A DNA stretch of 64,000 nt from Bispira polyomma (Eukaryota): contig OZ287756.1 in assembly GCA_965649765.1 (NCBI GenBank), positions 43,400,001-43,464,000 of the forward strand. Reading direction: 5' to 3'. Under the pieces are notes generated by a model, which did no database searches, had not been told where the DNA came from, and saw only the letters and a program-made list of their open reading frames with translations. Position 1 is the stretch's first letter. Each line of letters begins with the position of its first letter. Shown here piece after piece: positions 1 to 58,143 of this stretch. The translations under genes were made by a program, and so were the position numbers.

Positions 1-85
1 CTGAAAACATTTCGTTCCACATTTGCTGCACCAGTTGTATGTGACTCTGTTGTATCCTCCACTATGGCTTGTGTGGTTTCAGGTT
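1..85 (-). CDS. Thr/Glu-rich linker exon after the lectin domain, truncated by the window edge
   Basis: Acceptor gatacag| at 86-87; open in phase 1 as (E)PETTQAIVEDTTESHTTGAANVERNVF. No diagnostic motif. Confidence 0.6.
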
Positions 86-315
86 CTGTATCACATTATT
101 GTTATATGAATGTATTTCAGTTTTACATTTCTTTCAACAGCTTTGCGACGGCCGGTTTAGTGGTGAGGAAAACCACCAACCTATGGCAAGTACCTGACAA
201 ACTTTCTTTATTTGTAGCTACTGTTGCTGGTTAACTATACCGATCAAGGAAGGGTTGAAATTTTGAGTACCAATTAATTTTAGCGATTTCAGTGGCGATA
301 TTTAAAAAAAAATTT

Positions 316-427
316 CTAGTAAATATTTAAATTGTATGATATTTGAACAAAAACATACCCATTTGTGAAATTCCAGTAAATAATTAACTTGTATGATATT
401 TAAAGAAAACATACCCATTTGTGAAAT
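316..427. repeat. Two-copy ~55-bp tandem duplication
   Basis: agtaaata...ttgtatgatattt...aaaacatacccatttgtgaaatt occurs twice in succession. Confidence 0.75.
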
Positions 428-870
428 TGATTTTAGTGTAATTGTAAATGAGGCAAGAAGTATATATATATCACAGAAGGAACAGATTTAAATCTTTCTT
501 ATCGAAAAAGGCTGGCAGTTAACCTAACCTTACGTTATTTTCTTATCACTCTCGCATATTCAAGGAATACAATTCTAAATAACAGTTTGCAGAGCAGAAA
601 CTTTGACCAACTATTCTACTCCCTGCTTTCCTCCACCAGTAAACTGCCACTAGTGATATGACTATAAATTATTATTTTACTTTCCTTCAGTACCATACAA
701 TACTAAGATGTCAGCACTGCATCATGAAATTTTGAACATTTTACATCTTGAAATAGAGAAAGTAGCCTTTGGTGTGTGGTCTAGAGACTAAGGTTTAGTA
801 AAATACAACTCCTTTGGTGGCTAAAGGGGTTAAACTTAAAATATAACTAAGCATAGCATTCAGTGCTCAC

Positions 871-966
871 CCAATGTTGACTGGCACACAAAACTATAGT
901 CATCTGAACAGGGTTTGGTGTTCCAGGTTCCTTGTCTATTAATAACCACACAGTTATCGTAAGTAC
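871..966 (-). CDS. C-type lectin domain exon 3 (WND-like motif, closing cysteines)
   Basis: gtttcag|...|gtgagc, 96 nt, phase 1 to 1. Translates (G)TYDNCVVINRQGTWNTKPCSDDYSFVCQSTL. Confidence 0.9.
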
Positions 967-1189
967 CTGAAACATCAACATCACATGCTTTCATATTGTC
1001 ACTGCTGTGTACTTAAATGACACTCAATTCTAAGGTCCTGTAAGTCATTATTAGTCCAATCTGACTGAATATTGAATTCAACAATGAAAGTTCTTCTAGA
1101 ATTCTCGTTATGCTTTTGCGATACAATGACTGCAAAAAAAACCTATCCAGATAACCAGAATAAATAAACAATTGATATCTTGTATTTGT

Positions 1190-4100
1190 TACAGTAAATA
1201 TGCGAAATTAGTAAATACGCGTTTTTACTAATACGTTTCAGTAGATATGAGAACTTACTGATTTAGTCAGTAAATATGCGTAATCCCTAAAAATTTAATA
1301 CACATATTTACTTTTTTTTAGCTCTAGTAAGTTCACATAATTACTGAATTGTCTTATTATTTGTTAAGTGATGATTACCTAGTTACGTTAAGTCTTTTTA
1401 TCCATATGATGTATCATTAATAATGTTACAATTATTCTTCAAAATATTTACACCTGAAAATGAAAATAGATTTGCTAATTTCAATGACTTTTTCTTATAC
1501 ATTACATGTAATGTGGTATATTCAACTTTGATAATAAATAATGCCAATTAATTAATTAGATTATTACAAAAAATATGTTCATGGATAAATAGCTAGTAAT
1601 GGTAAGTTCATTATGTATTTTTAGGTACTACATTTGTCATTATCAACATCATTATTGAGAATTTTATAAAGAAGTTGTCATTAATTTAACCTAAAAGAAT
1701 AATATGTTCTACTAAATATCTAATAATACCCATTTAAGTTTTAAATTGCACTGCATATTGTTATTTAAACTCATTTAGATGTTACTGCAACCTGTAAAAG
1801 TTTAGTAGCCATAAGTACGAGATATAATTGGATGACTAGCATTCAATTGTGAGTCTTTAATGAGATTTACCTCCCACAGAAGCCACATTTAACAGTTTTA
1901 GTTACAACAAAGAAGGGTTTATAAAGGATTCTTTAATATAGTTATTGTACTACCTTCAAAGGTAGTGTGGCCTTTATAAACATGAGTCTTTGATGATATT
2001 TGGATGCTGTAGAAGCCACGGCTAACTGTTTAAATAATATCAAAAGAAAATATTACCTTACTATATTCTAGTATTTATTTTATTTAATTGTAATTTAAGA
2101 AAAATCAAATAATAGTGTTTAATTTATTAATTTGGTAGGGCAATACTCTACCAAATATAATATCATGGTTTGTGAACTGAACTGGTTGCCCTTGGCTACA
2201 ATGTTAGGACAACGTAATCTCAGAACTTACAAAGGCCTTGGCTTTCATATTTAGCATACATGTTAGGTCTGTTTCAAAGAGGCACCGTTAGTAAATTTGT
2301 GTTAATTCAGTTATAATTGAGGGAGAAACAGCCATTTTTCAGCCATTTAACACAAAAAGAGACAGGTTTGTAGGCCAATCTCAGACTGTGACATCATTCC
2401 CTTGTTCAAAGAAAGAGTTGAACTTTGTCCTGTAGTACTTTACATGCCAGTTAAGGGGCCCAGCATGATTTTCTTTTTGGCCAATGAAAATTTTGTCTGG
2501 GCATGGCTTGATCTAATTAGGAGTGTTAACTTTCTATTTTTCAAATGAAAACCTTGTCTGGGCGTGGCTTAATATAATTTGGGAGTATCAGTCACAATTG
2601 ATTTTCTGTAACTGCAGTTTTGCTTACACAAACCTGCTCATGACGTTGTTCACTTCCTCTTTAGTGATGCTGTTTGTATATTTTCACTAGAAGGTATTTC
2701 ATAATACTGAAATAGTAGAGTACATACAACCTCTATTATCCAAAATTGTTGAGAAAGTTACATTTTGCAATTATACTACATGACTCATGACAATTTGTTT
2801 GTTCTGTGTGCTCACCTGAAAAATTAATGTTAAATGTGTAGTTTGTGACATTGAAAAAAAGACCAAAGCAGCTTTCATTGGATTTGCTTGTACTTGTGCT
2901 AGGTTTACACTTGTTGATGTATTCAGTTGATTGCTAATGTGTGCGTTTGATTTATTGGTCAAAATTTCCTGCATAGCTTTTTGCTGTAGTTTACTTGCCA
3001 CAGCATAATTGTTAATACTGGCCACATTTTTATGGCCAGTGACTTGCTGTATTAGTGTGGATGGAACTCCGGCTTGCAGCAGTTTAGTGCGCATGGTTTT
3101 TCGCGATTGTTTTTTTTCCCCCAGTAATTCCTGCTTTTTGACACATAACTTTTAAGAAGTTGTTAATGGAATGCCTTCCTAAGGGAGCACATCTGTATCA
3201 ATATTTCAATTTATCTTCATTGACATTCATGTGGTGTACTGCAAGGTAAAATAGTGTACTTACCAGGAACATTTTTTCAGGTCGACAAACCATATTTCTG
3301 TTTCCAATATAGTTACTAGTAAAGCTAAAATGTTAAGATTCATATGACTATAAAGAGTAATTTATACACTTTGTAAAACTTTTTACAAAATTTAATTCCG
3401 TTCCATACTCGGTGAGATGTACCCATTTTGAAATATTGTTTCAGTCATTTTTTTCTCTCCGCATTTTTTTTATTGTCGCGAAGACATTCAATGAAAATGA
3501 GCCAAGATCTGTTACAATGATTAAACTTCAAAATATATTGAAATATATATATAACAAAGCATGCTACACAGAAGTTTTTGAGCGATTTCCTTAAATAACT
3601 GATTTTGTTTCCAACTTTGGAAAGGTTTTTGGTTAGGGTATGATTTTCGCAGCTGTAGCATTTTCATATAGCGTGAGTGAAAATAGAATATACTAGACAC
3701 TGTACCTATTTCGACACCCCTTTGATTTTACTGATGGTTCACTATTTTCGGGTCGTTTCTTTATTAGACATTTCGCCCATGACTTGTTCACACATTTAGA
3801 TGGCAAACTGATACATTTTATCGCATTGTTTTGACCACTGAAGATGAATATATACTGATAGGTAGCAGTACAAAAAATCCATCTTCGTCTGTTCCAAGCC
3901 AGAGCCCTACCTAATTGTGCGACCAATTATTGGTCGCAATTGTCATTTTGACAAATATTTTGACTACTCTTGTGAAAATAAACAAAAATGTACAGACAAT
4001 ATACATATGATGTAGTGTGATTTAAAGTAACCAAAATAAAGACATTAATAACTTTTGGAACACAAACAACCAAATAATACTACATGTACATCATATGCAT

Positions 4101-4328
4101 GAGAAACACTGAAAATACCAAATATTAATATTGAATCTAAATTAAACACAATAAATTAAACATTAAATTAAATAAAATAAATTTTCACATTACAAAATTT
4201 CAGTAAATGCGCATATTTACTGAAGATTTTAGGGATTATGCGTATTTACTGACCAAATTAGTAAGTTCAGGTATTAACTGAAATTTTTAGTAAATACATG
4301 TATTTACTGATTCTGCATATTAACTGTG
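1190..4328. mobile_element. Old non-autonomous DNA transposon with long subrepeated terminal inverted repeats (CACAGT-type end, possibly EnSpm/CMC-like)
   Basis: 1190-1355 (tacagtaaatatgcg...gtcagtaaatatgcgtaatccctaaaa) is the diverged reverse complement of 4200-4328 (ttttagggattatgcgtatttactgac...gcatattaactgtg). No target-site duplication resolved. Confidence 0.6.
2950..3300 (-). pseudogene. Crypton-type (DUF3504-like) tyrosine recombinase C-terminal relic
   Basis: Reads FYLAV...YRCAPLGRHSINNFLKVMCQKAGITG, then after a frameshift RKTMRTKLLQAGVPSTLIQQVTGHKNVASINNY, which carries the R, GH and Y motifs. Contains a stop and a frameshift. Confidence 0.72.
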
Positions 4329-4813
4329 ACATATATATACATCTTTATGTATATTTGTTATATATAAAAATATATAAAATATGGACAATTCTGGTTCATA
4401 AGCTGCTACATTAGAGCCAAACATCTGCAATGTAATCGCAATCATGACAAACCATATTATTGATTAAAGTTTTGCTGATCAACAAAGAAACCACCACGAC
4501 CAAAAGAGGTTTTGATATAGCTATACTACATGATATCTCATTAATCCATTGAAAACATATAGTTTTATGTGGCAAACAAATGTAATAGGTAAGTTTATTT
4601 CCTTTTTGTACTAAGTTTAGAAGAGTAGAAGGGCAACATATTGAAATAAATTATAATTGTCGACTTAATCCCTCAATAAATTGACTAAGCTTTCCTGATT
4701 GATCAACTTAGTATCTTGATAAATGGACTTAGCTCTCGGGATTTAGCGACTTAGTATCTCAATAAATCAATGTTATCAGAGATTAGAAACAGATGTTTAG
4801 CCTTTTACTGTAC

Positions 4814-4926
4814 CTCCATTAGGTTCATGATCGTCCGACCTCCAGTTAGACCAATCCAAATCTGAGCCATTAACCCATTCCCATTGGCCTTCTACACGCT
4901 GGTCAGTGAGGCCAATATACAACTTT
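4814..4926 (-). CDS. C-type lectin domain exon 2 (WIGL-like and EPN motifs)
   Basis: gttgacag|...|gtacag, 113 nt, phase 2 to 1. Translates (R)KLYIGLTDQRVEGQWEWVNGSDLDWSNWRSDDHEPNG. Confidence 0.9.
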
Positions 4927-5299
4927 CTGTCAACACAACATCATAGTTTATTTGTATTTTATATTTTAAACCTGCTTTAAAAACCAAATTAATAAACCAA
5001 TCATATACATGTGCTCCAATACATAGCCAGGTCCCAAGAAGAACATGTAGGTGTACAGGGAGGTACCTAGGCCAGGTAAGCGAGTTCGAAAAGATTTTAT
5101 GGTTGTAATATGAAATATTTATACTCATACCTACAAAACAATAAATTTGGACCAACTGGTTTACCTCAAATTATACATGCATACAGTTGATATGATATTG
5201 TAGATTTTTGACATGCCAAATAGATGGCATGCATCATCTAAAATGCAACATCATTGACAGTTGTTAAAATCGTAGTTGTTTGTTTCTAATTTTGTGATC

Positions 5300-6250
5300 A
5301 GGAAGGTGACGAGGAGGAGTAAGATTTAAATGTAGGGTAAGCGAGGACAAACAGATGCGTCTTAAGGTTGCTCTTGACATCAGAAAGCATTTTTCCGGAT
5401 TTTATATTGGCTGAATTATTGTTCCATAGAGTTGGTGCTGCAACGAAGAGGACGTACAATCCAATCTATTAACGGGTTCCTGTATCAAAGATGGAGATTC
5501 TATTTCCATTGGTAAGCATACTGCAAGACAGAAATTAGCTTTTAATAGTTGTGAGTGGTGTCATTTTTAGTGTCATTTTTAGAACATCTTTTTACTGAAT
5601 ATAATTCCGTTATAAATTTTTGGCTGGCAACTCAAGAAATATATGAAAACAGTTGTCACTTGAGCAGAATTTTATCAGAGAAGGAGAGTTTATTTCGAGT
5701 ACTCGAAAGTGATCATAAAAATAATATTGTGAATCAAATGAATACAATTATACTTTATGCTCAATATTACATTTGGAAGTCAAAACTAGCAAAAAACATC
5801 CAACCATCGAAGAATTTAAAAAAAACTATGCAACTTTCAATTGTATATAATAATATTGTTATGTAATAGCATGACTTTTATAGTTGAATATTTCTAATAG
5901 CTGGGGATGACAATGTTTGTGTCTGTCCTGTGACAGCAATGAGGCGAGCTATGGGGGCTGGCCAAAGTTGACAGCTTTGTATGTAGTGACATTGGGCTAT
6001 AAGTTGATGCAGTACTTGCTAACCAATGGAACTTTTTGAGAAGAGATGCACACTGACGCATAATTCCACACAACTCTGCACAAGTTATTCTGGATTGACT
6101 GTAGCTTTTGCAACTGTTAATTGAACTAAAAAGTAGAGAATTGCTGTAGTTCTATCGAGGGTACATTGAGGGTTCACTCATTTTAGAATAACCCTGCTCA
6201 GAATTTTTTGTTCAAACTAGGATTGCATTTGGATATTCAAGAAAAGGTAG
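5300..6250. mobile_element. Decayed LINE fragments (CR1/L2 3' end on minus, Tx1/L1 C-terminal piece on plus at ~5560-5870)
   Basis: Minus strand gives VAAPTLWNN...LKTHLFVLAYP; plus strand gives EHLF...FW...IILYAQYYIWKSK. Confidence 0.55.
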
Positions 6251-6437
6251 ATTGGCACTGACGCAAAGGTCAGATAAAAGCGAGTATAAGCTTAAAAATA
6301 ATAAAGACCTTAATCGCACACTTGCTACATTCCCATTTATTATGCTATTAAACAGGTCCAAAAATCAGATGGTTTGTCATAGCATTATCACTTTACTTAA
6401 CAGGGTAAAATATGGTATTACTGGTGTAATCACTCAC

Positions 6438-6618
6438 CTAGTTCCAATGAAACCATGCTTATCTAGAAATGTGTTGACCTCTGGTGACGTTAAATGTAGC
6501 AGGGTTCCCCCTCCTGTTTGACACTTTGCCAGGGCCTCGGTGAATCTGTGTTCTTTTGTCACCATCCAGTAACATAGGCCAGTAGAGGGAAGGATAGTGG
6601 TGGTACAGGGGCTAGAGA
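6438..6618 (-). CDS. C-type lectin domain exon 1, spliced in frame to the channel
   Basis: ctttcag|...|gtgagt, 181 nt, phase 1 to 2. Translates (V)SSPCTTTILPSTGLCYWMVTKEHRFTEALAKCQTGGGTLLHLTSPEVNTFLDKHGFIGT, matching the CTLD pattern C..CY...F.EA...C...GG.L..L.S.E.N.FL. Confidence 0.88.
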
Positions 6619-6869
6619 CTGAAAGTAAAAGGGCATAAATACTGTATATTAGAGGCTTATAGTACAGGGACTAAAGACAGACTGGAAGCCAAAAGGACTC
6701 ACAATAGTAGAGGTAAGGGTTAAAGTATATGGGGTTAGAGACTGGAATTAAAAGAGTTATAAGAGTAGAACAAAGACTTGTAACAATAAACTCCCCCCAC
6801 CACCCACCCCTAAAAGATATCAGAGAGCTGACAGAGAGTAGACAAGGTTCGACATATAAAATTTATTAA

Positions 6870-7132
6870 TATTGACCTACATAATAGCTGTCTCTCTTTA
6901 CTTTCATTATTATCTCACTTTACACCTATGTCTTACCTCCGTATGTCCTAATGGTATTCAGGTCATGTACGCCCCACTTGGCCTATATAATGACTTTCTA
7001 CTTTTACTTCTAAAGCTATCTTACTCCACACCCGTACCCTTACATTTCCTCTTCATAATCTAATTTAGGTCATCCAGGCCTCACTTGACCTATATAATAG
7101 CTGTATGCCTTTATATCTACAGTTATATTACT
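6870..7132. repeat. ~120-bp tandem repeat derived from an exon/intron boundary (left part)
   Basis: Units of ttgacctacataatagctg...taggtcatccaggcc, the same unit as 10503-10925. Confidence 0.75.
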
Positions 7133-10100
7133 TAGTCCAGTATAAATTTGAAAAAGCGTGAAATTTAGTAAGAACAAAGTTTTTTTGCAGAAATCAAATC
7201 TTTAGAGAGTCTAGATCAATAATCAGATGGGTGCCACTCTGGCATTGTTGAGCAATTGTTTTTATTCAACGAAATTCAAAATGGCCGCCATGCAGACCCT
7301 AGTATATCAAAAATGCACATTAAATCGTTATTTCTTTGTCAATTTTTAAGTGTAATATATCATTTTCTTTAGACTTTTACACCCTAATACATTCCTGAAA
7401 CATTTATAAGATATTAGGGACATTTAATTTGACTACCATACAGAAGTAACAAAAACCAGATAAAAATCACCATGACATTGCAATGCTTGTGCTTTAATTA
7501 AATGAGTTTAATAAAGTAAATTTAATGTTTCAATAATAGGGGTAGTTCTTTCATTGGCACAATAGTTTTCCGCCTCATGGTGACAATAGGATGTACAAGA
7601 TAATCTGGCTCTGTCACAACTACATCAATTACTGCTGCATGGAGTTTCAGAAGAACACGAACAAGCAACAACTTGTAGGAGGCTTGGTGGTACAACAGTA
7701 GCTGATCCATACACCGGATAGAGGATATCTTTATCTCTCTTCTCCCATCCAGCAAAAAGACTTGCACCCATTCTCTCCAGACTGACCTTGGACTTCACGA
7801 GGAGATTAAAAGCTGTATTTTTCGTATTCTAAAAGGATATGAAACACTGTCACAACCTGTTCATGCATGGAGGGGCAGCAAATTCTCACATTTTGAGCAA
7901 AGCTTTGTTGTAGATTCATTTATGCTCATGATCTTCATGTTGTGCTTTTTGTGTCTTGATGTCATATTTCCAACCAAAGTATGTGACCACTCAATCGCCT
8001 CCCATGGCAGCCAAATTGTGTTTACATTGTCTAATGATGAGTTACAGTCAAGAAATCCACCCCACAGAATCTAAGCTGCGTAAATCCCCAGGACTTATAA
8101 CCCCCCAATTTTTTGGAAATCGCTGCAGGGCAACAAGGGCAAACTCTATCCTTTTCTTCCTGCTCTCCAGCAGTACAGCCTGCTGAAATTATATGTCATT
8201 GTTTTATCGGCAGTGACTAATAGCTATGCTTTAACATTGTGACATCACAATGTGTTTAGTATGTTTTTGATGTCATATGTTGTATGCCTGTATTCTCTCT
8301 GAATGCCTGGACATTCTCATAAATCCTATGGCTTTGCTGTTGCTGCACCAACAGAATGGAACAGGTTGCCACAAAATGTCAGATCACAGCAGACAATATC
8401 AGGTTTTTGAAGCCAGCTCAAGATTCATTTGTTCAGACTGGCATATCCCCCACCTTAGTTACTCCCTGGTTGGTGCTCACTTGGTAACGACTTTTGCTCG
8501 ATAAGGGACAATCCCTTTTTGGAACTCAACGCATTAGAAGATTCTTATCAATTTTGCGCTATATAAATGTTTCTATTATTATTATTATTATGATACTCAA
8601 GTCTATCTTTCACTCAACCCTCATATTGCTCACAAAATCTTTTCGGCCTACTTGCTGACTGCCTCTTCTTAGTACTTGGATGAATTGCTCCAAAGTGAAA
8701 TTAAATTCCAACAAAACTGAACTTATTGTCATTGATCATAAGAAACGCAGTAAGTGTGTAAGATCATTATTCCCCATTAGACTATTGGGCAATGATATTC
8801 AGCTCTTTCCTAATGTAAAGAACCTTTGTGTAACCATTGACTCCACTTTTTCATTTGATTCGCACATCAGCAACATTTGTTGCTCCTGTTAATATCACAA
8901 TTGTGACATGAACATAATCAGAAATCATTTGTAACTGGGTACTGCCATTACTGTGGCTAACTCCCTTGTTAGCAGCCGTCTAGACCAATCCAATTCCCTT
9001 TAGCTTGGAGCCAAAACGTCTTACATTTACAAGTTTCAGTCCATTCGAAACTGTCTGTGATGAGTCATTTTTCATCTGGGTATCCATATTGATGTATCTC
9101 CATACCTAAAAAAATCACATTAACTTCCTTTTCACTATAAAGTTTTGTTTAAATTCCATGTGAAAACTTTCAAAGCTGTTATTTCTCAAAAGCCTTGATA
9201 CCTTCATGCACGTCTCTTCTCCAGCCACCTTAAAAGGATAAAGAGACTTCATGTTTCCTCTGTCAGATCTATCAAGAATGCTGGATCAAGAGCTTTCTCT
9301 AACGCTGCCCCTATGTTATGGAATGGTCTTCCAGTTGAGCTAAGATCACTTGAAACACTCTTTGGTGTTAGAAAAAAGTTTAAAACCCATCTTTTCAAAC
9401 TCACCTACCCCCATAGTTCCCTCCCTGTGCACCCTAACATCCTTCCTTATGACCTTTGCTATGTGTTTGGACTTCTCTATTGGTTTACTGACTCTGTTGT
9501 TGTGCTTTGGAAAATGCCACACATCAATAAGGCATGTTAAAAATCCACAATTCAATACAATTATGAATGCAACATGATTTATGGACAACTTTAGCTTAGT
9601 GATACAGTTTGTATTTTAATGATTACTAATTCTTTTTCAATGATTATCATTATCTGAGCTAGTTGGTAAATTATGTTATATTTATTATTGAGAAAAATTA
9701 TCCATTAGAAGTACTTATTTTATTCCCTAGGTTCTTAAAGTTGCGATGTATATTGTAAAGTATAAAGAATAAGATTATGTATAAGTACATGTATAACACC
9801 TCAACTGAACAATAATTTCGTGATCTTTCTAATATTATGCATGATTTTCAAAACACAAATAGTTATGGCCCATTAAATTGCTCTTATGTGTGAAACCCTA
9901 AAAAAAAAGTTGTCAATGAAATGGCGAAAATACTACCTGCACTAGGGTACATATACAATATTGTGGGGGTTTTTTCGCAAAAGCTGTCACACATACTATG
10001 CTATCATGAATTTTTCAAATCAGTGCATATCTGGTTTTAAAAAAATAGGTGCATATCTGCACAAATGTGGATGGAAATTTTGTTTTGTTGTAAAATCCTT

Positions 10101-10502
10101 AATGTACAATAAAGTGGTTATAACCCTGTCAGGGTGTGATGGTGGAGAATCTATTTTTTATTCTGCATCTGGCATAAAATAAACTACATTAAAAATTATG
10201 TTGAAAGCAGCCTTTACAATTGACACTTTGCAAAAAAATTACAATGTCATGGTAAATTTTAGCTAGGGTTTGTATAGTAATTATCTTGAATTTACCTAAT
10301 ATCTTATAAATATTTTAGGCATGTATTAGAGTGTAAAATTCTGAAGAAAATGATATATTCCACTTAAAAATTGATAAAGAAATAACGATTTCATGAGCAT
10401 TTTGAGTATCTAGACCCTCCAAAGATTTGATTTCTGCAAAAAAACCTTGTTCATACTAAATTTCACGCTTCAGCTGATTTTGGGGGTTTGTCTACTGGAC
10501 TA
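7133..10502 (-). mobile_element. Academ DNA transposon, internally deleted
   Basis: Ends TAGTCCAGTA...TACTGGACTA with ~250-350-bp imperfect inverted repeats and a 3-bp TSD ACT (7130-7132, 10503-10505). Minus-strand relics: XPG-like LHA.TGCDSVSYPF (~7830-7880) and a Cys cluster PPSLLQVVACSCSSETPCSSN*CSCDRARLSCTSYC (~7575-7700). Confidence 0.85.
8280..9560 (+). mobile_element. CR1/L2 LINE 3' fragments nested in the Academ element
   Basis: WMNCSKVKLNSNKTELI, FSNAAPMLWNGLP...FKTHLFKLTYP, and an (ATT)n tail at ~8575-8590. Confidence 0.8.
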
Positions 10503-10925
10503 ACTCTACATATGCATTCTTACCTCCCCTGTTGCGCTCCCTTTTTGTCTCCAATCTAGTTCACCCAGGCACTAAGTGATCTACATAATAGCTGCATACT
10601 TTTACTTCTATAGCTATTTCATTACACACACATATACTATACATTCCCTTTTTCTCCTCCTTCTCTGTCTCCAATCTAGGTAACTTAGGCGCCAAGTCAC
10701 TTACATAATAACCATATACCATTATGTCTATAGCTATTTCATTTTACACATCTACCCTACCTCCCCTCTCCCTTCTTTGTCTCCAATCTAGGTCATCCAG
10801 GCACCATTTGACCTACATAATAGCTGCATACCTCTACTTCTATAGCTATCTCATTGTATACATACACCATACCTTCCCTCTTCCTCCTCCTTTTCCGTCT
10901 CCACTCTAGGTCATCCAGGCCCCAC
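10503..10925. repeat. ~120-bp tandem repeat whose last unit includes the 3' end and donor of the channel exon at 10873-11053
   Basis: About 3.5 units of acctacataatagctgcatac...ctatagctat...tctccaatctaggtcatccaggc. Confidence 0.85.
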
Positions 10926-11053
10926 TTTGCCAGTAGGGTACTCAGCCTGTCACTGAGGTACAGTTTGGACTTCTTCACTGGATTGATATTGCACACACTG
11001 ATTGCTGGGAAGTCTAGTTCTCTGTGTTGTGTCCACTCTATGTCCACAGTCAC
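10873..11053 (-). CDS. DEG/ENaC channel exon: post-TM1 palm motif plus polybasic furin-type site
   Basis: atcag|...|gtatgg, 181 nt, phase 0 to 1. Translates VTVDIEWTQHRELDFPAISVCNINPVKKSKL...WRRKRRRKRE; FPAxxxCNxN is the family signature. Confidence 0.93.
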
Positions 11054-12435
11054 CTGATACAGGTAAATGTTTAGACTTTAGATTTAATATCAGGCACAGC
11101 CTGATATTGTTTTCAATCTAAATAAGGTGCAGCCATGTTGGAAATTGCCACCATGTTGTCGGTTTGGTCATGGATTGGTCAAATCTATCAAAATGGTCAA
11201 ATTGATGAGTGTCAGATATATATTATCGGGCAATTATCAGGCACAACCTGATTTTGCCGCCATATTGAAAATAATATATAAGATCTTCATGGATTAGTTG
11301 GACGCAATCAACCTGGCCCAACTGAGGGGTGTCAGTTGCATGTGTGAGTTTTATGTTTTCAGTTTAACATCAATTACAATAACTGCAGCATATTGGTTGA
11401 GGAATGCAGTACAAGAAACCTTGTCAATAGTTACCAGACATGGGAAAAGTTTTAGCTTCTAAATATATTTGAAATTTGACACAAATTTTTAACAACTGCA
11501 TTTCAGTGGTTGGAGAAAGCAGCAGAGTATACTTTATCCTTGGTCATCTGTCACTTTTGACAACTGCATATGATATTATGATAGTGAAGCAAAGCAGGGC
11601 ATGGTAGTTGGTCAATGTTTTATCCACTGTAAATCATTAGTCTTCAGCAAGTTCACCGTCAATTTTCCCACATATATTCAATAGCTAGATTTAAATCCGT
11701 GAATACAGTGTTGGGAGGTGAGAGTGTTAACCTCTAAGGTCCCCACATATACTGAGTGTATACTATATAAGCTTGGAGTAAATATATTCTTTAGTTGTCC
11801 AGGGAATGCAAGAAGCTGGTTCACAAGTGATATCCATCTTAGAATAACACATTTAAAATATCACTTGATGATCTTGTCTACCTTTAGGAAAGAATTAACA
11901 CTTCTGGTGTTGCAACTTAGTCTCTGTTACCTAAACTAAATGTAAATTAGACTAGTTTGGGTCTACCGTCGACTTACAACACGTTTTATGGTTTAATGTT
12001 TTGTGCACTGGTACATCAAATCAGAACAGTGTTCCCTGCTTTGCCAACAGACTGGCTTTCATGCAAGCCTACATCAACTGAAGGTAAAGTAAGAGCTCAG
12101 ATTTAAATTTGCTGATTCAAAAATCAGTACTGAAAGGCATGATAGCAAGTATGTTTCAGCATTTTGTCACATCTTCAGTTTCAATTAAATATTATGTCAA
12201 GATGCACTTTAATGGAGAATATGAGACCCTAATTCACAAGACTGCCTTCTTTCTATATTTTTGGCTGAAGTATTTCTAGTAATAAAATTATTCCTTATCC
12301 ACCTTTATTAAATGTACACTTTTACAAAAGAATTGTACCTTAGGTTAGTAATAATTAATAAACACAGGAATACTCACCTCATATTTACAGAATAATTGTA
12401 CCTTATGTTAATAATAATTAATGAACAATACTCAC

Positions 12436-12536
12436 CTCATATTTAAAATAAACCACAGCCAATGAAATAACTTGATACAAGAGTACCCCACTGGCACCCA
12501 GACTGGTAAGTGTCCAGAAGAGCTTCTTACAAACAC
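12436..12536 (-). CDS. DEG/ENaC channel exon encoding TM1
   Basis: tttacag|...|gtgagt, 101 nt, phase 1 to 0. Translates (G)VCKKLFWTLTSLGASGVLLYQVISLAVVYFKYE, a typical K/R-L-F-W TM1 ending in YF.Y. Not in the ORF track. Confidence 0.9.
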
Positions 12537-13339
12537 CTGTAAAGTTTAACTATGGATTTATACAATTTGATATGTACTTTAGTAAATTTGTGAAGTTCAA
12601 CTACAGGATTATCCAATTTTATAAGTAATTTTCTAAAATATATTAATGTTAACGACTACAATCGAGTTGATAGAGGTTATAAGGTCGTTTGCAAAACAGA
12701 CAAGGAGACTGTTCTATTCAGAAGGTGCTGTGACTAGAACTGGCTTGATTTTCAGTGAAAAGGTAGAGGGCACTCAGGAACACATATGGAAACACATTCC
12801 CCCATTTTTAATTGAAGTTGTTTGGAATATAAAGTTTGGTTCTATGTGGTAGATTAGAGAGGAACTTATTTTACTCATAATACATTATCAATTTATTCTA
12901 CCTATAATAAGTTATCAATTTTAAAAGACTTTTTGTTTATAAATGTAATCTGATATGTATTTTACACAATGTAGAAGCATCTAACAAATAGGTTGTAACA
13001 TGGGCGACACGTTGAGTTTGCTTCTATCACCACCTGTGACGTATAACAATCACTAATGCCCTTTGCTCTCTCATGACTGATATCATGGTGATAATAAAGT
13101 GACATTGAAGACACACTGTATATAACCTGTTCAGTCTCACTGACAGGTAAATAGACATGACAATCTTTCTCAACTGACAAAGGTTAATGTATTATGTGTA
13201 ACAGTTGTTTCTTGCTTGTGTCCAAAATATTCCTATTGTACAGGATAGCTTGACAAAATTGAAACCACTGGCTGAATTCTCGATAGACCTCAGATTAACT
13301 CCTAAATATAAAGCCCCATATCTCTGCATATGTTTTCGG

Positions 13340-13680
13340 CACTAAAAGCTTTATTAGAGGTTTGAGTGTCGGACTTTAGATCTAAAAGATCTGGGGTTCC
13401 CGGTTCGATCCTCGTTGTTGGCCTGGTGATTATACCCTTAGACAAGTTACTTTATACAAAATTGTCCCGCTCGACCCAGGTGTATAGCTAGGTACCTGGC
13501 CACAAATGGGTGTTAGTATTCGTGCACTGTATGTGGCAGCACGGCTAGTATGTAAGGGAGCTGAGACTGAACAATTGGTTGACAAGTGGAAAAACCAAGG
13601 CTATGGTCATTATGTCAAAACACATTAGATAACAGTGATGTTCATAACTGTGCTATTTCAAATGATAATTATTATTAAAA
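13340..13680 (+). mobile_element. tRNA-derived SINE
   Basis: B-box ggttcgatcc, a conserved-core-like cccttagacaagttacttta...ctcgacccaggtgta...ggtacctgg segment, and an ATT-rich tail. Confidence 0.65.
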
Positions 13681-14169
13681 TGGTCACATGTATATGGCTA
13701 TTCCCTGTACAATGACTTACTTATAAACTTCCAGACTTGACCTTAGTTTGAGGTTTCTTTAGAAGAGATCAGACCCTCTTGGATTACAAATGGACAATTT
13801 TCACTCTGGCTAAATTTCCATATTAAGATATTCACTGTATATAATTAGGGTAACTATAGCAATTAAAGTACTAACTGATCTCTTCCCCTTGGCTATGTGT
13901 GGGTAACAATGTTAACTGGATCTTCTACTGTGGTCTAGTAGGTAACACACTTAATTAGTAACAAAGACGACCTGGGTTCAATCCAGCTTCAGGCGGATAC
14001 ATACTTGTTCAAAATGACAACTCAAAATGACTGATGCTGGTTGACTGTTGACAGTCGCAAAAAAAGGTAATTGGCCCTATAAGTACCAGATAAAATGTAG
14101 ATAAGAGTGCTGAGTATAAATTTTAATGCATTACAATACAACAATACAACAACGGAAGTACCAACTGAC

Positions 14170-14308
14170 CTCTTTCCTTAGCTATGTGTGGGTAACCATG
14201 TACTGTGCTGTGGCTCCAGAAGTTTTCTTGCACTTCTCTCTGACTCAGCTGATGGACTGCCTTGTCCTGTTTACCAAACAAAGCCTTCGGGATGTACACA
14301 CCTGTCAT
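14170..14308 (-). CDS. DEG/ENaC-family channel subunit, first visible coding exon (cytoplasmic N-terminus with HG motif)
   Basis: Translates MTGVYIPKALFGKQDKAVHQLSQREVQENFWSHSTVHGYPHIAKER; F..STxHG is the pre-TM1 DEG/ENaC motif. Acceptor ttacag| opens the exon at 14334, donor |gtcagt follows 14170 (phase 1). The frame is open upstream of the ATG, so the true start may lie further 5'. Confidence 0.88.
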
Positions 14309-14733
14309 CTTTACACCTGTCGTCTCAAAAACACCTGTAAAGGTCAACTTACTGTTTACAGTTACATGTACACACAATTGTATATGCAATTTAGAAAACT
14401 GTAAGAACAGTATTATTGTATTTTAATGTGTTTTATTGACGCGAGGCATCTGCTAATGTGCACCAGCTGAGTCAATAAACCAATCAGGTGTCCTAGAACA
14501 TAGCGCTAGGTCTTCATCTTCAAAAATGGCATATTAACATCTAGCCCAAGGAAGTTATCCCACAAAAGAACCTGTTGGCATTAGCAGAAATCAAACTGGG
14601 GACCCTGCAACGAACTCCGTAACCACTAAACCACAAGAGACAATACACGATAAGTACACTAGAATTATTTTTAATCAGCTTATAAAGATGAACCGTATGT
14701 TATAAAAAATTAGTGTTTTTCAAAACATTTTGG

Positions 14734-17035: not shown

Positions 17036-20000
17036 TGTCTAATCCATAAGTAGGGATATTTGACACCAAAACAGACCTAGAAATAAGTCATCGGTTTTAT
17101 GAAAAACAACTTTATTACACATAAAAATGTGTTTTATACCGTTCCTTTGTGAATAGTTTTTATACCATATACAACAATTATACATTGCCTTCAATTCCAA
17201 AAAAATAGCTAAAAGTCAATAATTCTTAGAAATTTAACAAGATGCCATTTAATGAAATTTATTTAACACATTGATGTGTTCTGGTATACTGGGTCTTTTT
17301 GTTTGTAAAAATGTCCAAAAAGTAGCACACATGTTCCAATGAAGACAAATGTTTGCTTTAACAGAATCTACAAGAGGACCTTGTATAACAAGTATCTTTA
17401 TTTCTATGGTAGACGGTGTTCATATTTGTGTTACAGGGTTACTTTTTTAGTGGAACATTTTGCAATAACACAACTACCCTAACGCCTCGGAGAACCGATG
17501 CATATTTGTATCCACCAAAAAGACAAAGCACCCGCAGTAGCAAGCACTCTAGCTAGCATCCCAGCTAGAAGCCTATGATTTCCTATTAAGGCATTTATGC
17601 TAAAGCCTTAAATGGCACAAGTGGGTTTGACATTGCAAACCTGTGGGACCAATAATAAGTCTGTGATAGGCACTTTAAAGTTTGGCGTACCCGTTTGACC
17701 TTGCACGAGGGATGCAAGGTTAAATGTAACCAAAAGATTAGCAGCCTATGATTTCCTGTAGGTTGGTTTCACATCCCATACCTCTACGACCATGATTTTC
17801 TTAGGTTGGTTTGACATTCCAAATCTCTAGGACCAATAAGCACTTTTAAATTTGGCTACCCTTATTTGACTTTCAAGGAAGGGCCCAGGGTCAAACCTGA
17901 CCACATCAGAAGACTTCCAGCCCATGATTTTCTATAGGTTGGTGTCACATCTCACAACTGTAGGACCAATAATAAGTGAGTTATAAGTACTTTTAAATTT
18001 GGCTACGCTTATTTGACCTTCAAGAAGGGGCCAAGGTCAAACCTGACCACATTAGAAGACTCTCAGCCCATGATTTCCTATAGGTTGTTTTCACATCCCA
18101 AAACTGTAGGACCAATAATAAGCGAGTTCTAAGCACTTTTAAGTTTAGCTCCCACGTCTGACCTTGAAGGAGGGGCTCAAGGTTAAATCTTACCACATCA
18201 GAAGAGTCCTAGCCCATGATTTGCTACAGGTTGGATTCACATCTTAAAACTGTAGGACCAATAATAAGCGAGTTATAAGCACTTTTACGTTTGGCTATCC
18301 TCGTTTGACCTTGAAGGAGGGGCCCAAGGTCAAACCTAACCACATCAGAAGACTCTTAGCCCATGATTTCCTTTAGGTTGGTTTCACATCTCAAAACTGT
18401 AGGACCAATAATACGCGAGTTTTAAGCACTTTTAAGTTTAACTCCCCACGTCTAACCTTGAAGAAGGGGTCCAAGGTTAAATCTGAGCACATCAGAAGAG
18501 TCCTAGCCCATGATTTCTTATAGGTTGGTTTCACATCTTAAAACTGTAGGACCAATAATAAGCGAGTTATAAGTACTTTTAAATTTGGCTACGCTTATTT
18601 GACCTTTAAGAAGGGGCCAAGGTCAAACCTGACCACATTAGAAGACTCTCAGCCCATGATTTCCTATAGGTTGTTTTCACATCCCAAAACTGTAGGACCA
18701 ATAATAAGCGAGTTCTAAGCACTTTTAAGTTTAGCTCCCACGTCTGACCTTGAAGGAGGGGCTCAAGGTTAAATCTTACCACATCAGAAGAGTCCTAGCC
18801 CATGATTTGCTACAGGTTGGATTCACATCTTAAAACTGTAGGACCAATAATAAGCGAGTTATAAGCACTTTTACGTTTGGCTATCCTCGTTTGACCTTGA
18901 AGGAGGGGCCCAAGGTCAAACCTAACCACATCAGAAGACTCTTAGCCCATGATTTCCTTTAGGTTGGTTTCACATCTCAAAACTGTAGGACCAATAATAC
19001 GCGAGTTTTAAGCACTTTTAAGTTTAACTCCCCACGTCTAACCTTGAAGAAGGGGCCCAAGGTTAAATCTGAGCACATCAGAAGAGTCCTAGCCCATGAT
19101 TTCTTATAGGTTGGTTTCACATCTTAAAACTGTAGGACCAATAATAAGCGAGTTATAAGCACTTTTACGTTTGGCTATCCTCGTTTGACCTTGAAGGAGG
19201 GGCCCAAGGTTAAATCTGAACCACATCAGAAGAGTCCCAGCCCATGATTGTCTATAGGTTGTTCACATCCCAAAACTGTAGAACCAATAATAAGCGAGTT
19301 ATAATCACTTTTAAGTTTAACTACCCTCGTCTGACCTTGAAGGAGGAGCCCAAGGTCAAATCTGACTACATCAGAAGAGTCCTAGCTCATGATTTCTTAT
19401 AGGTTGGTTTCACATCTTAAAACTGTAGGACCAATAATAAGCGAGTTATAAGCACTTTTAAGTTTGGCTATCCTCGTTTGACCTTGAAGGAGGGGCCCAA
19501 GGTCAAACTTGACCACATTAGAAGACTCTCAGCCCATGATTTCCTATAGGTTGTTTTCACATCAAAAAATGTAGGACCAATAATAAGCGAGTTATAAGCA
19601 CTTTTAAGTTTAACTACCCTCGTCTGACCTTGAAGGAGGAGCCCAAGGTCAAATCTGACTACATCAGAAGAGTCCTAGCTCATGATTTCTTATAGGTTGG
19701 TTTCACATCTTAAAACTGTAGGACCAATAATAAGCGAGTTATAAGCACTTTTAAGTTTGGCTATCCTCGTTTGACCTTGAAGGAGGGGCCCAAGGTCAAA
19801 CTTGACCACATTAGAAGACTCTCAGCCCATGATTTCCTATAGGTTGTTTTCACATCAAAAAATGTAGGACCAATAATAAGCGAGTTATAAGCACTTTTAC
19901 GTTTGGCTATCCTCGTTTGACCTTGAAGGAGGGGCCCAAGGCAAACCTGACCACATTAAAAGACTCTCAGCCCATGATTTCCTATAGGTTGGTTTCACAT

Positions 20001-20037
20001 CTCAAAACTGTAGGACCAATAATAAGCGAGTTATAAG

Positions 20038-23000
20038 TGTCGTATATGAGGTTTAGTATACACCAGCTTTCGGTTGTTGGGCGGACTAAGATGTACGCAA
20101 ATGTCGGATGACCCGTTAGTGCCCTTGAAGAACAGAAATAAACTTTATTATGTTATTTCCTGTGTTTTAGTGAAACCTAACCATAACAGAACATAACATG
20201 GTGTGAGATGTGTTCACGAGTCACTAAACCTATAGTTGTGCTTGTACTATGTGCTTGTAGTACATGCTTGTGTACTTCTTCTGTGGGGCGTTGAGTGATA
20301 CTAAATCCTGTGCCTAAGTGAACCTGATGTACTGTGTACTTTTTTCTTTGTGGTGTTGAGTGATACTGAATCCTGTCCTAAGTGAACCATGGAAAACATA
20401 CAGCCCCCTCGATCTATGGACTTTACAGCCCATGCAAATTTGGCTGACAGTTGGCGAGGTTTTAAAGACAGATTTAAATTATATTTACAAACTTCAGGTG
20501 CAGATAAGAAGGATGAATCAATCCAGGTGGCTATTCTTTTGCACACCATGGGAGAGCAGGCAATCGAAACATTCCCCTCGTTCACATTTGACCCTCCAGA
20601 AAATAAGGAAAAGTTATCGCCAGTGATTGCAAAATTTGAGGCTTATTTCACACCAAAGACTAATGTAGTGTTAGAGAGGTTCAACTTCAACAAGGCCACC
20701 CAGGCTGAAGGAGAGCACATTGAAAGTTATCTGGCTCATCTGCGGACATTGATCAAAACTTGTGAGTATGGTGATTTAGCAGATTCCCTGATCAGGGATA
20801 AGATTGTTGTTACCACAACTAATAAAGGTTTAAGGGAAAGATTACTGAGGGAAGCAGATTTGACTTTGGGAAAATGTATCGATCTTCGTAAAACAGCAGA
20901 GGCAACAAGACGCCATATTGAGCAGCTTCAACAGGGTACTGCCGAAATAGCAGTTGTATCTAGAGAAAGGAGCAGTGACAAGATCTCAAAGTCCAAACCA
21001 AGTAGTAGTGCTGGCAACTGGGGTAAAAAGTCAAGAATGATTTGCAGATATTGTGGTACCAACCATCCACCTAGGAAATGTCTGGCCTATGGGAAAATGT
21101 GCACAAAATGTGGTAGGCGGCATCATTTTAGTGTAATGTGTGGAAATTTCAAAAAAGACTTACATTCAACTGACATATCAGCTGATGTAAATAGTGTTGA
21201 CGAGGACAATAATAATGATTTGTTCTTCAATGTCATTAATGTGGATGCTGTTGATAATGTTCCTAGCAACTGGACATGCCTGGTCACAATAGGCAAGTGT
21301 GTTATCCCTTTTAAATTGGACACAGGTGCCCAGGCAAATGTAATCATGGAAGGTGACCTCAAGAGCATAACAGGAGTGAAAATTCATGAAGCTAAAGAGA
21401 CACTTCGTGGATACACAGGTGACAGATTGCAGGTTATTGGAAAATGTGTCTTAGAGGTGAAATATAATACTAGGAAAACCAAGGCCCTGTTTTATATTGT
21501 GAAGGGAACCCAACAGAGTTTGCTTGGCCTTGATTTGTGCAAACCTTTGGAATTAGTGCAACTGAATTGTAAAACTGTCACAGTTGACCCTACTTCATAT
21601 CCTAGTGTGTCAGTTGTGGAGCAAGATAGCAATGGGTGTTATGCCTGGATAGGCAGCGAGTACTGTGATGTGTTTAAAGGACTAGGATGCCTTCCCGGTC
21701 ACTATCACATAGAAATGGATTCCTCTGTTACCCCAGTAGTATATCCATGCCGCAAAGTGCCCTTTCAACTAAGGGAGAAATTTAAGGAAGAACTGGACAA
21801 TATGGAAGAAATGGGAGTTATTACAAAGGTGAACCAGCCAACTGACTGGGTCAGTGCATTTGTAATTGCTGAGAAACCAAATGGGAAACTACGCGTTTGC
21901 CTTGACCCTCATGCGTTAAATTCTGCCATAAAACGTGAAAGATATGACTTACCCACAAGAGAGGAAATTCAGTCAAAATTTGGGAACTGTAAAGTATTTT
22001 CAAAATTAGATGCCTCAACTGGATTTTGGCAGATGTGTCTCAACGAAGAAAGCTCTTATCTCACTGCTTTCTCTACTCCATATGGCCGATACCGCTACCT
22101 TCATTTGCCATACGGCATCAGTTCAGCTCCTGAAGTGTACCATAAAACAGTGCATAAATTGTTTAGTCATATCCCAGGAGTAGATACTTCGATGGATGAC
22201 ATAGTAGTGGCAGCAAGTATCAGAGAAGAACATGACAAAATACTGAGGCAGGTGTTGGACACAGCTAGAAAGAACAACTTAAAGCTCAACCAGGACAAGT
22301 GCCAGTTTGGTGTACGTGAATTAGTATTTCTGGGCGATGTGGTCGGTGCGGACGGTATGAAACCCGATCCAAAGAAAGTATCTGCAATAGTGAATATGGA
22401 AGCCCCAAAGGACAAAGCTGCTGTTTCACGCTTCATGGGTATGGTCAGTTACTTATCAAAGTGGATACCAGATATGGCTAGCAAGGCAGCACCACTGACA
22501 AATTTGACTAAGAAGAATGTACACTTTGAATGGGAAAATGAATATGAGAAGTCATTCCAGTACTTGAAGCAGTGCCTAAGTAGTGAACCAGTTCTGAGAC
22601 TTTACAAACCTGGATGTACGTTAAAACTATCATGTGACGCTAATCAATAAGGACTAGGTTGCTGTATATTGATGTATGATGATGGAGAGTGGAGGCCACT
22701 GGAATATTTCTCACGCAAGGTGCTTGACTCTGAAACAAGATATGCAATGATAGAAAAGGAACTTCTGGCAATTGCTTTTGGGTGTGCCAGGTGTCACCAG
22801 TATATTTATGGAACTAAGGTGATGGTCGAAACTGATCATAAGAGTCTGATACCATTGTTTAAGAAACCGCTGTCTGACTGTCCCCTTCGGGTTCAAAGGC
22901 TATTGATGCAGCTTCAAAGGTATTCCTTAGTTCAATACGTGCCAGGAAAAAACTTGTTGTTCCAGATACATTGAGCCAGGCAACTGAGAAGTCTGCATTT

Positions 23001-24807
23001 CAAACTGACAGAGACTTAGTTCGTGAGGTAAAGTTGTATGTTGACACTGTGGTTAAAACATTACCCTTTTCAGATATTCGCCTAGAACAGGTCAGGCAGG
23101 AAACTTCAAAAGATGTACAATTTAGAGACCTCATGCACACAGTTATTTATGGATGGCCCAACTGCCGGGAGAAGTGTTCTCCTCTGAGTCTCCCATTTTG
23201 GAATATCCGGGCAGAATTAAGTGTAGCAGACGGAGTTATGTTTTGATACCAACATCTATGCGCCCAGATACGCCCAGATATGCTGAAGAAAATTCATCAA
23301 GGTCATATGGGAGTAGTCAAGTGGGCACAGAGTTATTCCAGTATCAAGGGGTTAATTACCTTATCCTGGTTGATTATTATTCAAATTATCCAGAGGTGGT
23401 AACCTTACAAGACATTTCTGCAAACTCAGTCATCAATGGCACTAAATCCATCATAGCGAGATATGGCATACCTGATGAGATAATTTCTGATGGTGGAGGG
23501 TGTTACGCATCGGCTAGATATAAGGCATTTACTGAGGATTGGGACATCAAGCATGTCATTACATCCAGCTACATGAGCAACAGCAACGGGCAGGCAGAGT
23601 CTTGTATTAAGGTAGTCAAAAACATCTTGAAAAAAAGCAAAAATTCTGGTTCTGACTTGTTTAAAGACTTATTAGCCTATCGCACCACTCCATTGAGTTC
23701 CGGGTATTCCCCAAGTGAGTTATTATATCAGCGAAAAATCAGGTCAACACTGCCAATGCATTGGTCACTCCTGTCAACAGCCACTGATGCATATGTGGTT
23801 GAAAATAAAAGCCTAGACAAGCTGAAGCAAGCATATTACTATAATCGTGGTTCAAAACCACTTCAAGACTTTGAAGTCGGTTCTTATGTGCTGGTCTATA
23901 ATTGCAGAAATGATCAGTGGGATACTGAAAGGACATATTGTAAAGAAGATTAGGGATCGTACCTACCAAGTTAAACTGAGGTCAGGCCCAGTCATCACCA
24001 GAGACCGTAGGTTTTTGAAGAAATTTACACTGGACACAGATATTCCTCTGAAATCACAGCTTCTAGTGTTGCCTGAAATGGGTAAGAGTGACGAAACTGA
24101 GACAAGTGAAAAAAAAAGTCTGTCTGGTAAAAAGGTGATTGTCACTTGGCTGGAATCTGAACAAGAAATAAGAAATGTTCCAAAGGAGTGCCAACAAAGC
24201 ATGGTTCAAGCAGACATGACCACAGAATTACAACCAGTGGCGTCCCCATCCCCAGAAACTCGCAAGTCCTCCAGAACAGTGAGGCCACCAAAATGTTATG
24301 GATATGAGTAACAGTAATTGTGAACATTAATTAGCTTTAAGGAACAGAATGGTAAAGATTCTGTCAGGGAGTGACTGTGCTAGTAACCTCTCCTCCCAAG
24401 TTAATGAACTTTTATCATGTTAAAGCATTTAAGAAAAGTTTTTAAGAAATTAGTTTTTAGTTAAGAGTATTAATTTGTTTAACACTGTAACAGGACACAA
24501 GGATACTACAAAACAAAGCTGTGAACTTTCAAACTAGATACAGGACGATGAAGGAGTTATTATTGAAACATACAGTATCTATATATTATTTAATAGTTTA
24601 ATTAAGTTTAAAGAAAAAGCATTGAATCTTTTTTGGAGAAAGGAAATGTCGTATATGAGGTTTAGTATACACCAGCTTTCGGTTGTTGGCCGGACTAAAA
24701 TGTACGCAAATGTCGGATGACCCGTTAGTGCCCTTGAAGAACAGAAATAAACTTTATTATGTTATTTCCTGTGTTTTAGTGAAACCTAACCATAACAGAA
24801 CTTAACA
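20038..24807 (+). mobile_element. Ty3/Gypsy LTR retrotransposon (Mag-like), both LTRs intact, pol disabled
   Basis: 161-bp LTRs TG...CA at 20038-20198 and 24647-24807 with 3 differences, 5-bp TSD ATAAG, PBS tggtgtgagatgtg (tRNA-Leu-like) at 20199 and PPT ggagaaaggaaa before the 3' LTR. Confidence 0.95.
20389..24311 (+). pseudogene. Gypsy gag-pol (two Zn knuckles, protease, RT, RNase H, integrase) with stop, frameshifts and deletion
   Basis: CRYCGTNH..C and CTKCGRRHHFSVMC, LDTGA, SMDD, CDAN*, ETDHK, LVDYYS...ISDGG...NGQAE. Stop at 22648-22650; the integrase Zn finger is cut after HQGHMG. Confidence 0.92.
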
Positions 24808-25105
24808 ATAAGCACTTTTACATTTGGCCATCCTCGTTTGACCTTGAAGGAGGGGCCCAAGGTTAAATCTGACCACATCAGAAGAGTCCTAGCCCATGAT
24901 TTCTTATAGGTTGGTTTCACATCTTAAAACTGTAGGACCAATAATAGGCAAGTTATAAGCACTTTTACGTTTGGCTATCCTCGTTTGACCTTGAAGGAGG
25001 GGCCCAAGGCAAACCTGACCACATTAGAAGACTCTCAGCCCATGATTTCCTATAGGTTGGTTTCACATCTCAAAACTGTAGGATCAATAATAAGCGAGTT
25101 ATAAG

Positions 25106-25262
25106 TGTCGTATATGAGGTTTAGTATACACCAGCTTTCGGTTGTTGGGCGGACTAAGATGTACGCAAATGTCGGATGACCCGTTAGTGCCCTTGAAGAA
25201 CAGAAATAAACTTTATTATGTTATTTCCTGTGTTTTAGTGAAACCTAACCATAACAGAACTT
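25106..25262 (+). mobile_element. Solo LTR of the same Gypsy element
   Basis: Near-identical to 20038-20198, preceded by ATAAG, lacking the last few bases. Confidence 0.93.
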
Positions 25263-55518: not shown

Positions 55519-55524
55519 TTTCAG

Positions 55525-58126: not shown

Positions 58127-58143
58127 CTGAAAAATTTATAAAG

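Follow-up and report, generated by a model that had tools for sequence, protein, structure and literature searches.

A predicted DEG/ENaC channel gene of Bispira polyomma with a C-type lectin-like domain in its finger region

Introduction

In the human epithelial sodium channel (ENaC), the protease-sensitive GRIP domain lies between finger helices alpha1 and alpha2 (PMC6197857). The agonist of FaNaC binds to the alpha1-alpha3 finger, and across the DEG/ENaC family the outer corner of the finger holds the ligand site, the protease sites of ENaC and the proposed matrix-tether sites of mechanosensitive members (PMC11026163). Here we describe a gene of Bispira polyomma, found in a 64,000-nucleotide stretch of DNA (hereafter the window; assembly GCA_965649765.1, contig OZ287756.1, C9:43400001-43464000), in which a C-type lectin-like domain (CTLD) is predicted to occupy the position of the GRIP domain in an otherwise complete DEG/ENaC subunit. 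The gene lies on the minus strand, with exons 1-7 inside the window and exons 8-16 to the left of it.

The gene product shares with vertebrate ENaC (SCNN1A/B/G) the fold with two transmembrane (TM) helices, the HG motif, the G/SxS filter, a Trp in TM2, and a polybasic convertase site together with an extra domain between finger helices 1 and 2. Vertebrate ENaC subunits are also the best PDB sequence matches of a relative of the gene product, P0011 (E 5e-55). The extra domain is nevertheless a GRIP beta-sheet in vertebrate ENaC and a CTLD with a stalk here. The inhibitory tract of GRIP lies between two protease sites, whereas the protein described here has a single furin-type cluster (residues 132-139). 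In addition, the PY motif is absent from the long C-terminal tail of this protein and of its tandem paralog, and the core is 29% identical to lungfish beta-ENaC. By these features the gene product is not a vertebrate-type ENaC, and its head appears to be a CTLD lacking canonical Ca2+/mannose recognition.

FaNaC and WaNaC, the peptide-gated channels of molluscs and annelids, are, like the protein described here, spiralian DEG/ENaC channels, and the P0011 model has its top Foldseek match in FaNaC of Aplysia. They differ in that a small peptide ligand is bound in the finger itself, and the FaNaC papers searched mention neither an appended domain nor the word 'lectin'. Stalked C-type lectin receptors (mincle, langerin, CD23 and mannose-binding protein, MBP) likewise carry a CTLD on a stalk and may form trimers, but the anchor here is the ectodomain of an ion channel, and the Ca2+/sugar site is incomplete (WNT). 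The nematode degenerins MEC-4 and MEC-10 also have extra extracellular domains with proposed matrix tethering; these are Cys-rich degenerin-specific inserts and not CTLDs. A lectin-bearing DEG/ENaC channel was not found in a full-text literature search, whose coverage was without most subscription journals.

Gene structure and predicted channel

The seven minus-strand exons that the initial annotation had placed in the window carry AG acceptors and GT donors, in phases 1,0,1,2,1,1, and join without a stop (Table 1). The same annotation had advised extending the sequence leftward in search of the thumb cysteines and TM2, and had named a lack of downstream TM2 exons as a finding that would speak against its proposal. 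Nine exons, all GT-AG, were found in the 10 kb to the left of the window (locus L004), and they supply palm, beta-ball, thumb and TM2. Joined together, the 16 GT-AG exons give 921 residues in one frame with zero internal stops. As the TM2 exons were found, a truncated channel was rejected; an assembly artefact was also rejected, because the layout recurs in an independent paralog and in other species and there is no N in the region. At the other end of the gene, the frame of exon 1 stays open from the ATG at 14308 to the acceptor at 14334. A further upstream exon may add residues or an untranslated region to exon 1, leaving the true 5' end unsettled.

Table 1. Exons of the lectin-bearing channel gene, and lectin matches beside related channel exons elsewhere in the genome. 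Window positions count from the first base of the window.
Feature	Position	Strand	Content	Phases, sites and Pfam match
Exon 1	window 14170..14334	-	cytoplasmic N-terminus, HG motif, aa 1-46	acceptor 14334, ATG 14308
Exon 2	window 12436..12536	-	TM1, aa 47-80
Exon 3	window 10873..11053	-	beta1-beta2, FPAISVCNINP, finger helix 1, RRKRRRKR (~10877-10900)	donor phase 1; ASC, E 2.8e-5
Exon 4	window 6438..6618	-	first CTLD third (C145, C156, C173)	phases 1 to 2; Lectin_C 2-34, E 0.03
Exon 5	window 4814..4926	-	CTLD middle (YIGL, WEW, W, EPN)	phases 2 to 1; Lectin_C 42-77, E 2.5e-5
Exon 6	window 871..966	-	CTLD end (C244, WNT, C258, FVC266)	phases 1 to 1; Lectin_C 80-106, E 1e-4
Exon 7	window 1..85	-	acidic, Thr-containing stalk, aa 271-298	terminates at window base 1
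Exons 8-16	C9:43399079-43390628	-	finger helices 2-3, beta-ball, palm, thumb, TM2 with GCS, cytoplasmic tail
Exons 8-16 on locus L004	9079-8930, 8575-8460, 8243-8080, 6114-6017, 5044-4899, 4133-4061, 3394-3337, 2757-2611, 1545-628
Lectin matches between exon-3-like and exon-10-like matches (7 genes)	C4:62.80, 62.86, 62.91 Mb; C3:5.33 Mb (two matches); C11:9.89 Mb; C6:22.36 Mb; C14:5.88 Mb
Lectin matches just upstream of exon-10-like matches	C1:53.79 Mb, C14:10.47 Mb

Comparisons with Pfam and PDB were made exon by exon, and for folding the joined 921-residue protein was represented by homologs. The exon-wise matches to Pfam ASC and Lectin_C agree with the order of elements first read from the translation, namely HG, TM1, FPAISVCNIN, RRKRRRKR and a six-Cys CTLD. 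Both of the DEG/ENaC motifs, HG at residues 37-38 (within STVHG, residues 34-38) and FPAISVCNIN behind TM1, are present. Hydropathy peaks at residues 59 and 637 mark two TM helices, and ASC matches were obtained at both ends of the protein. Outside the CTLD, the ectodomain including the thumb contains 14 cysteines (C101, 339, 346, 362, 455, 481, 485, 494, 496, 516, 526, 541, 543 and 547), which are aligned with those of relatives. The TM2 filter, GCS (residues 633-635), lines up with the GGS, GMS and GFS filters of relatives, and the surrounding SLWLGCS with FWMGGS of lungfish beta-ENaC. These features indicate that the gene encodes an intact ENaC-like DEG/ENaC subunit, for which channel activity is predicted.

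The lectin-like domain, its polybasic site and its stalk

Exons 4-6 most likely encode a true CTLD, because three collinear Lectin_C pieces in compatible phases are not expected by chance. The exon-wise Pfam and PDB matches recover the six cysteines of the long form (C145, C156, C173, C244, C258 and C266), a WIGL-type core (YIGL here) and the conserved Trp, together with EPN at residues 235-237 and WNT at 253-255; the fold itself was modelled for the homolog P0027, which aligns with the window exons. The best PDB sequence matches are mincle and MBP-A for exon 5, and MBP-C for exon 6. Along the protein, finger helix 1 is followed by RRKRRRKR (132-139), the CTLD (141-270), a stalk of ~30 residues, and the helices in front of the beta-ball (from ASC position 129 on). 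Correspondingly, the insert in the P0011 model is flanked by a helix that ends at model residue 101 and by helices that begin at 452. The lectin-like domain is thus predicted to sit between finger helices 1 and 2, the position of the ENaC GRIP domain. The 'Thr-rich linker' of the initial annotation is present behind the domain; it is short, however, with 23% Ser+Thr, and is equally acidic.

The motif R-x-K/R-R occurs in the window protein only before the CTLD, with none from the CTLD to TM2; in each of the five full heads that were examined it stands right in front of the CTLD, and neither paralog has a second furin motif after the domain. As no furin site follows the CTLD, the putative cleavage would leave the head on its stalk, and a lectin shed by furin was rejected for the same reason.

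A rival explanation takes the CTLD and stalk as a GRIP-like inhibitory pro-domain: a furin cut, followed by a non-furin cut within the stalk or where helix 2 begins, would free the head and open the channel. The alpha1-alpha2 position is that of ENaC GRIP (PMC6197857), the proximal polybasic site is conserved, and the best PDB sequence matches of P0011 are the beta and gamma subunits of ENaC. Behind the stalk lie two basic pairs, RK308 and KR325, and a different protease makes the second cut in gamma ENaC (PMC6197857, PMC8791634). ENaC activation nevertheless needs two cuts (PMC8791634), and the second furin motif is missing from both paralogs; RK308 and KR325 fall in predicted helices 2-3, outside the stalk, and a folded, fast-evolving recognition domain exceeds the needs of an inhibitory tract. 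We regard the pro-domain explanation as rather unlikely. The likelihoods given in this article to the mechanism and its rivals are our judgements, not computed values.

Probable inclusion of the lectin exons in the channel mRNA

The three lectin exons are very probably spliced into the channel mRNA, as judged from the layout of the gene and its relatives. Strand, order and phases of these exons are common to two intact paralogs and a gene of Lamellibrachia, the splice sites are at least as strong as those of the channel exons, and the interval between exons 3 and 4 shows no start or signal-peptide exon of their own. Purifying selection on the head and the lectin matches beside related channel exons elsewhere in the genome, both described below, lend indirect support to inclusion as well. 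In two relatives from other animals, P0011 (920 residues from 2763 nt, on a contig of 31 kb; ASC, with Lectin_C in the finger at E 1.1e-6) and P0027 (1047 residues from 3144 nt; ASC plus Lectin_C), the lectin lies within the channel reading frame of a single uninterrupted open reading frame (ORF), as deduced from the agreement of gene length with protein length. Such an arrangement does not fit lectin exons that belong to a separate transcript, a possibility the initial annotation had set against its own proposal. The 16-exon frame, TM2 and the single-ORF relatives support that proposal of a DEG/ENaC channel whose finger contains a complete CTLD.

The alternative is that the lectin exons are mostly skipped or form a separate nested gene, the fusion protein being rare or absent. 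Exons 4-6 make up a phase 1-1 cassette, which is symmetric; the frame would stay open after skipping, and no transcript was seen in the read sets, which are DNA. All of the features listed above, from the single-ORF relatives to the shared phases and the strength of the splice sites, argue against this alternative, and we consider it very unlikely.

The putative sugar-binding site

EPN, the mannose-type motif, is kept in both C9 paralogs. Aligned with MBP-C, exon 6 reads DNC...WNT for ENC...WND, so that WND is lost in both paralogs. At the position equivalent to Glu193, two residues before C244, one paralog has Asp and the other Ser. In Ca2+ site 2 of CTLDs, the Asp of WND and the Glu at the 193-equivalent position are metal ligands. 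The relatives read EPK/WYT, YPT/WQN and FPA/WKN, and neither EPN nor WND occurs in them. The family appears to conserve the fold and position of the domain and not the mannose site, which renders sugar sensing doubtful; the head may still bind glycans weakly or in a non-canonical manner. The suggestion in the initial annotation of a glycan- or microbe-sensing channel retains EPN in its favour, and is weakened by the lost Asp of WND, the variable Glu position and the relatives, which have neither motif.

The same residues bear on a Ca2+-dependent sugar-gated channel, in which mannose or GlcNAc of microbes or food would open the pore by binding to three EPN-type domains. In line with it, the six cysteines and the Trp core are intact beside EPN, and the best PDB matches of exons 5 and 6, mincle and MBP, are sugar-binding proteins. 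A Ca2+ ligand is, however, lost with WNT in both paralogs, the Glu position is Asp or Ser, and the sugar site is not conserved in the family. Sugar gating of this kind thus seems unlikely to us.

Paralogs and family in the genome

In a tandem paralog, at C9:43470059-43507378, each of the 16 exons is intact. Between the two intact paralogs, the ratio of non-synonymous to synonymous substitution rates (dN/dS) of the CTLD is 0.46 (below 1, p 0.04), and that of the core 0.14-0.22. Head and stalk evolve ~2.7x faster than the core at the protein level in this comparison of two paralogs; the difference is significant at non-synonymous sites (p 8e-5) and not at synonymous ones (p 0.23). Purifying selection thus acts on the head of the tandem paralogs. 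Both proteins end in RRANTLDFV despite the divergence of their tails (L004:628-660), which may provide a PKA site and a PDZ-binding end.

An inverted pseudogene at C9:43375144-43381400 on the plus strand (L006/L005) retains exons 1-4 and the last exon, with stops and a frameshift; exons 5-15 were lost by an internal deletion. In the window, a 112-bp minisatellite of 3.5 copies (10521-10929) is made of the 3' end of exon 3, including the codons of the polybasic site, and the donor, and similar copies occur in intron 3 of the paralog and of the pseudogene. About 3.5 kb of intron 3 (window 7099-10582) are absent from the pseudogene copy, and probably represent a later insertion here.

Elsewhere in the genome, lectin matches lie between exon-3-like and exon-10-like matches on the same strand at seven more genes, and two further lectin matches lie just upstream of exon-10-like matches (Table 1). 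Many of these matches are weak when taken singly, but seven of the 20 weak ones fall in intervals that make up ~0.01% of the stranded genome (under a naive uniform null). Lectin-bearing channel genes would number about nine to eleven in this genome, as estimated from match coordinates only. More than 100 ASC matches are found across the 1.035-Gb genome, many of them in intronless genes, with a seven-copy tandem array at C12:5.79-5.87 Mb. Two intronless ASC frames, C11:42774329-42776869 (971 aa) and C6:26434187-26436556 (946 aa), are related and have finger inserts of ~340-380 aa; two CTLD queries matched neither of these inserts.

Relatives in other animals

Among named sequences, the closest relatives of the gene come from annelids. 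In Lamellibrachia satsuma, LSAT2_023023 combines ASC with Lectin_C and is labelled a hypothetical protein, as foreseen by the caveat in the initial annotation that uncharacterised database entries might exist. The architecture is present as unannotated database entries, and no published description was found in the literature searched. Introns of LSAT2_023023 lie in phase 1 one residue past the polybasic site, as here, in phase 2 before the WIGL strand, and in phase 1 behind the domain. Its CTLD is degenerate in the gene model, without two of the cysteines. The gene model (L024:20087-22100) ends early and the thumb exons are in the next annotated gene, so that the annotation is probably split. 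LSAT2_023023, P0011 and P0027 share with the window gene the order of polybasic site, CTLD and Thr-rich stalk, and the Lamellibrachia introns match; on the other hand, all three have longer stalks and no EPN, P0011 and P0027 are single ORFs, and the Lamellibrachia model is split before the thumb. The head of P0027 is modelled as a CTLD with a predicted local distance difference test (pLDDT) score of 81 and a TM-score of ~0.7 to mincle, SPL-1 and langerin. In L026, from another sample, CTLD-like exons were detected behind an exon-3 match (local profile E 1e-4 and 1e-7), although Pfam did not confirm the pieces. The ESM Atlas returned only plain ASC clusters, with scores <=0.80.

In a tree of the channel core, built from ten sequences with no FaNaC sequence included, P0011 and P0027 form a group with the window gene and its paralog (98/97), and the Lamellibrachia protein is placed, with weak support, beside a Paralvinella protein without a CTLD (83/83). 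The shared introns favour one old insertion with later losses, albeit ten sequences cannot decide the matter. Alternatively, CTLDs may have been inserted repeatedly into the same intron, phase 1-1 CTLD modules being generic. The related channels P0028, P0029 and P0031 have a short CC-x-C-C-like cysteine cluster in the finger stalk, which is absent from the window protein.

These comparisons also bear on the possibility that the head has no gating role, serving instead in folding, trafficking or subunit pairing, or being a tolerated passenger in a loop that readily takes up shuffled exons; the subunit might then be a silent or modulatory partner. Within the family, no other part varies as much as the finger (PMC11026163). 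Across species the heads are ~15-28% identical against 43-45% for the core, and the degenerate CTLD model of Lamellibrachia points in the same direction. Against this explanation, at least nine genes of this genome and at least three further animals have kept the head, its dN/dS between the paralogs lies below 1, and cysteines and fold are kept in P0011 and P0027. A head without any part in gating is in our opinion quite unlikely.

Possible role of the head

The best reading, a tentative one, is that of a cleaved channel with stalked docking or tether heads. A furin-type convertase would cut after RRKR (residue 139). Because no furin site follows the CTLD, the domain would stay on the TM2-bearing fragment as its new N-terminus, on a stalk leading into finger helix 2. 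A trimer would display up to three such receptor-like heads, which may bind an extracellular macromolecule (matrix, mucus, cuticle glycoprotein or a protein of a partner cell) and anchor the channel at that site. They may also bias gating by a pull on finger and thumb, possibly through helix 2. The head would then be a variable docking module and not a fixed Ca2+/mannose sensor.

Several points weigh against such docking or tether heads: (i) P0028 and P0029 of Paralvinella are close relatives with the polybasic site and without a CTLD, showing that the channel clade can dispense with the domain; (ii) the stalk is ~30 residues long here versus 105-213 in relatives, and a long flexible stalk may couple poorly to the gate; (iii) the full-length AlphaFold model of P0011 gives head and stalk at low confidence and is uninformative on contacts between head and channel; (iv) skipping of exons 4-6 leaves an intact frame of 791 residues, so that skipping is compatible with the frame; and (v) no RNA run covering the gene was found, and the three read sets over the region of exons 6-9 are DNA, with contigs running through the introns and no splice joints.

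A bolder reading takes a spiralian family of DEG/ENaC channels as modular ionotropic receptors, in which a convertase frees the stalked head and a glycan, microbe or extracellular protein on the three heads directly gates the sodium pore. We hold this reading to be rather unlikely.

To our knowledge, most invertebrate DEG/ENaC channels are orphans without a known stimulus. In the protein described here the gating loop is predicted to carry a recognisable and separately expressible binding domain, which allows a direct search for its ligand as well as deletion or exchange of the head. Should the head control the pore, the channel would be opened by a macromolecular or microbial cue, which we did not find described for DEG/ENaC. 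If it is a tether, the protein itself would contain the kind of link to the matrix that has long been proposed for mechanosensory degenerins. In either case, the ENaC GRIP position would have been used as a slot for a shuffled domain.

Mobile elements in the remainder of the window

Besides the channel gene, the window contains two decayed Gypsy-like long terminal repeat retrotransposons, at 20389-24311 (plus strand) and 30521-35978, with frames resembling protease, reverse transcriptase (RT), RNase H and integrase, the second of which was recognised from ORFs only. A satellite with a period of ~146 bp flanks the first retrotransposon on both sides (window 17479-20035 and 24808-26142) and has related copies farther right on the contig. 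A fragmented LINE-like element with endonuclease- and RT-like frames lies at window 39269-41917. Two DIRS-like elements, each with RT and tyrosine recombinase, stand tail to tail at window 51539-56498 (plus strand) and 57134-61579 (minus strand).

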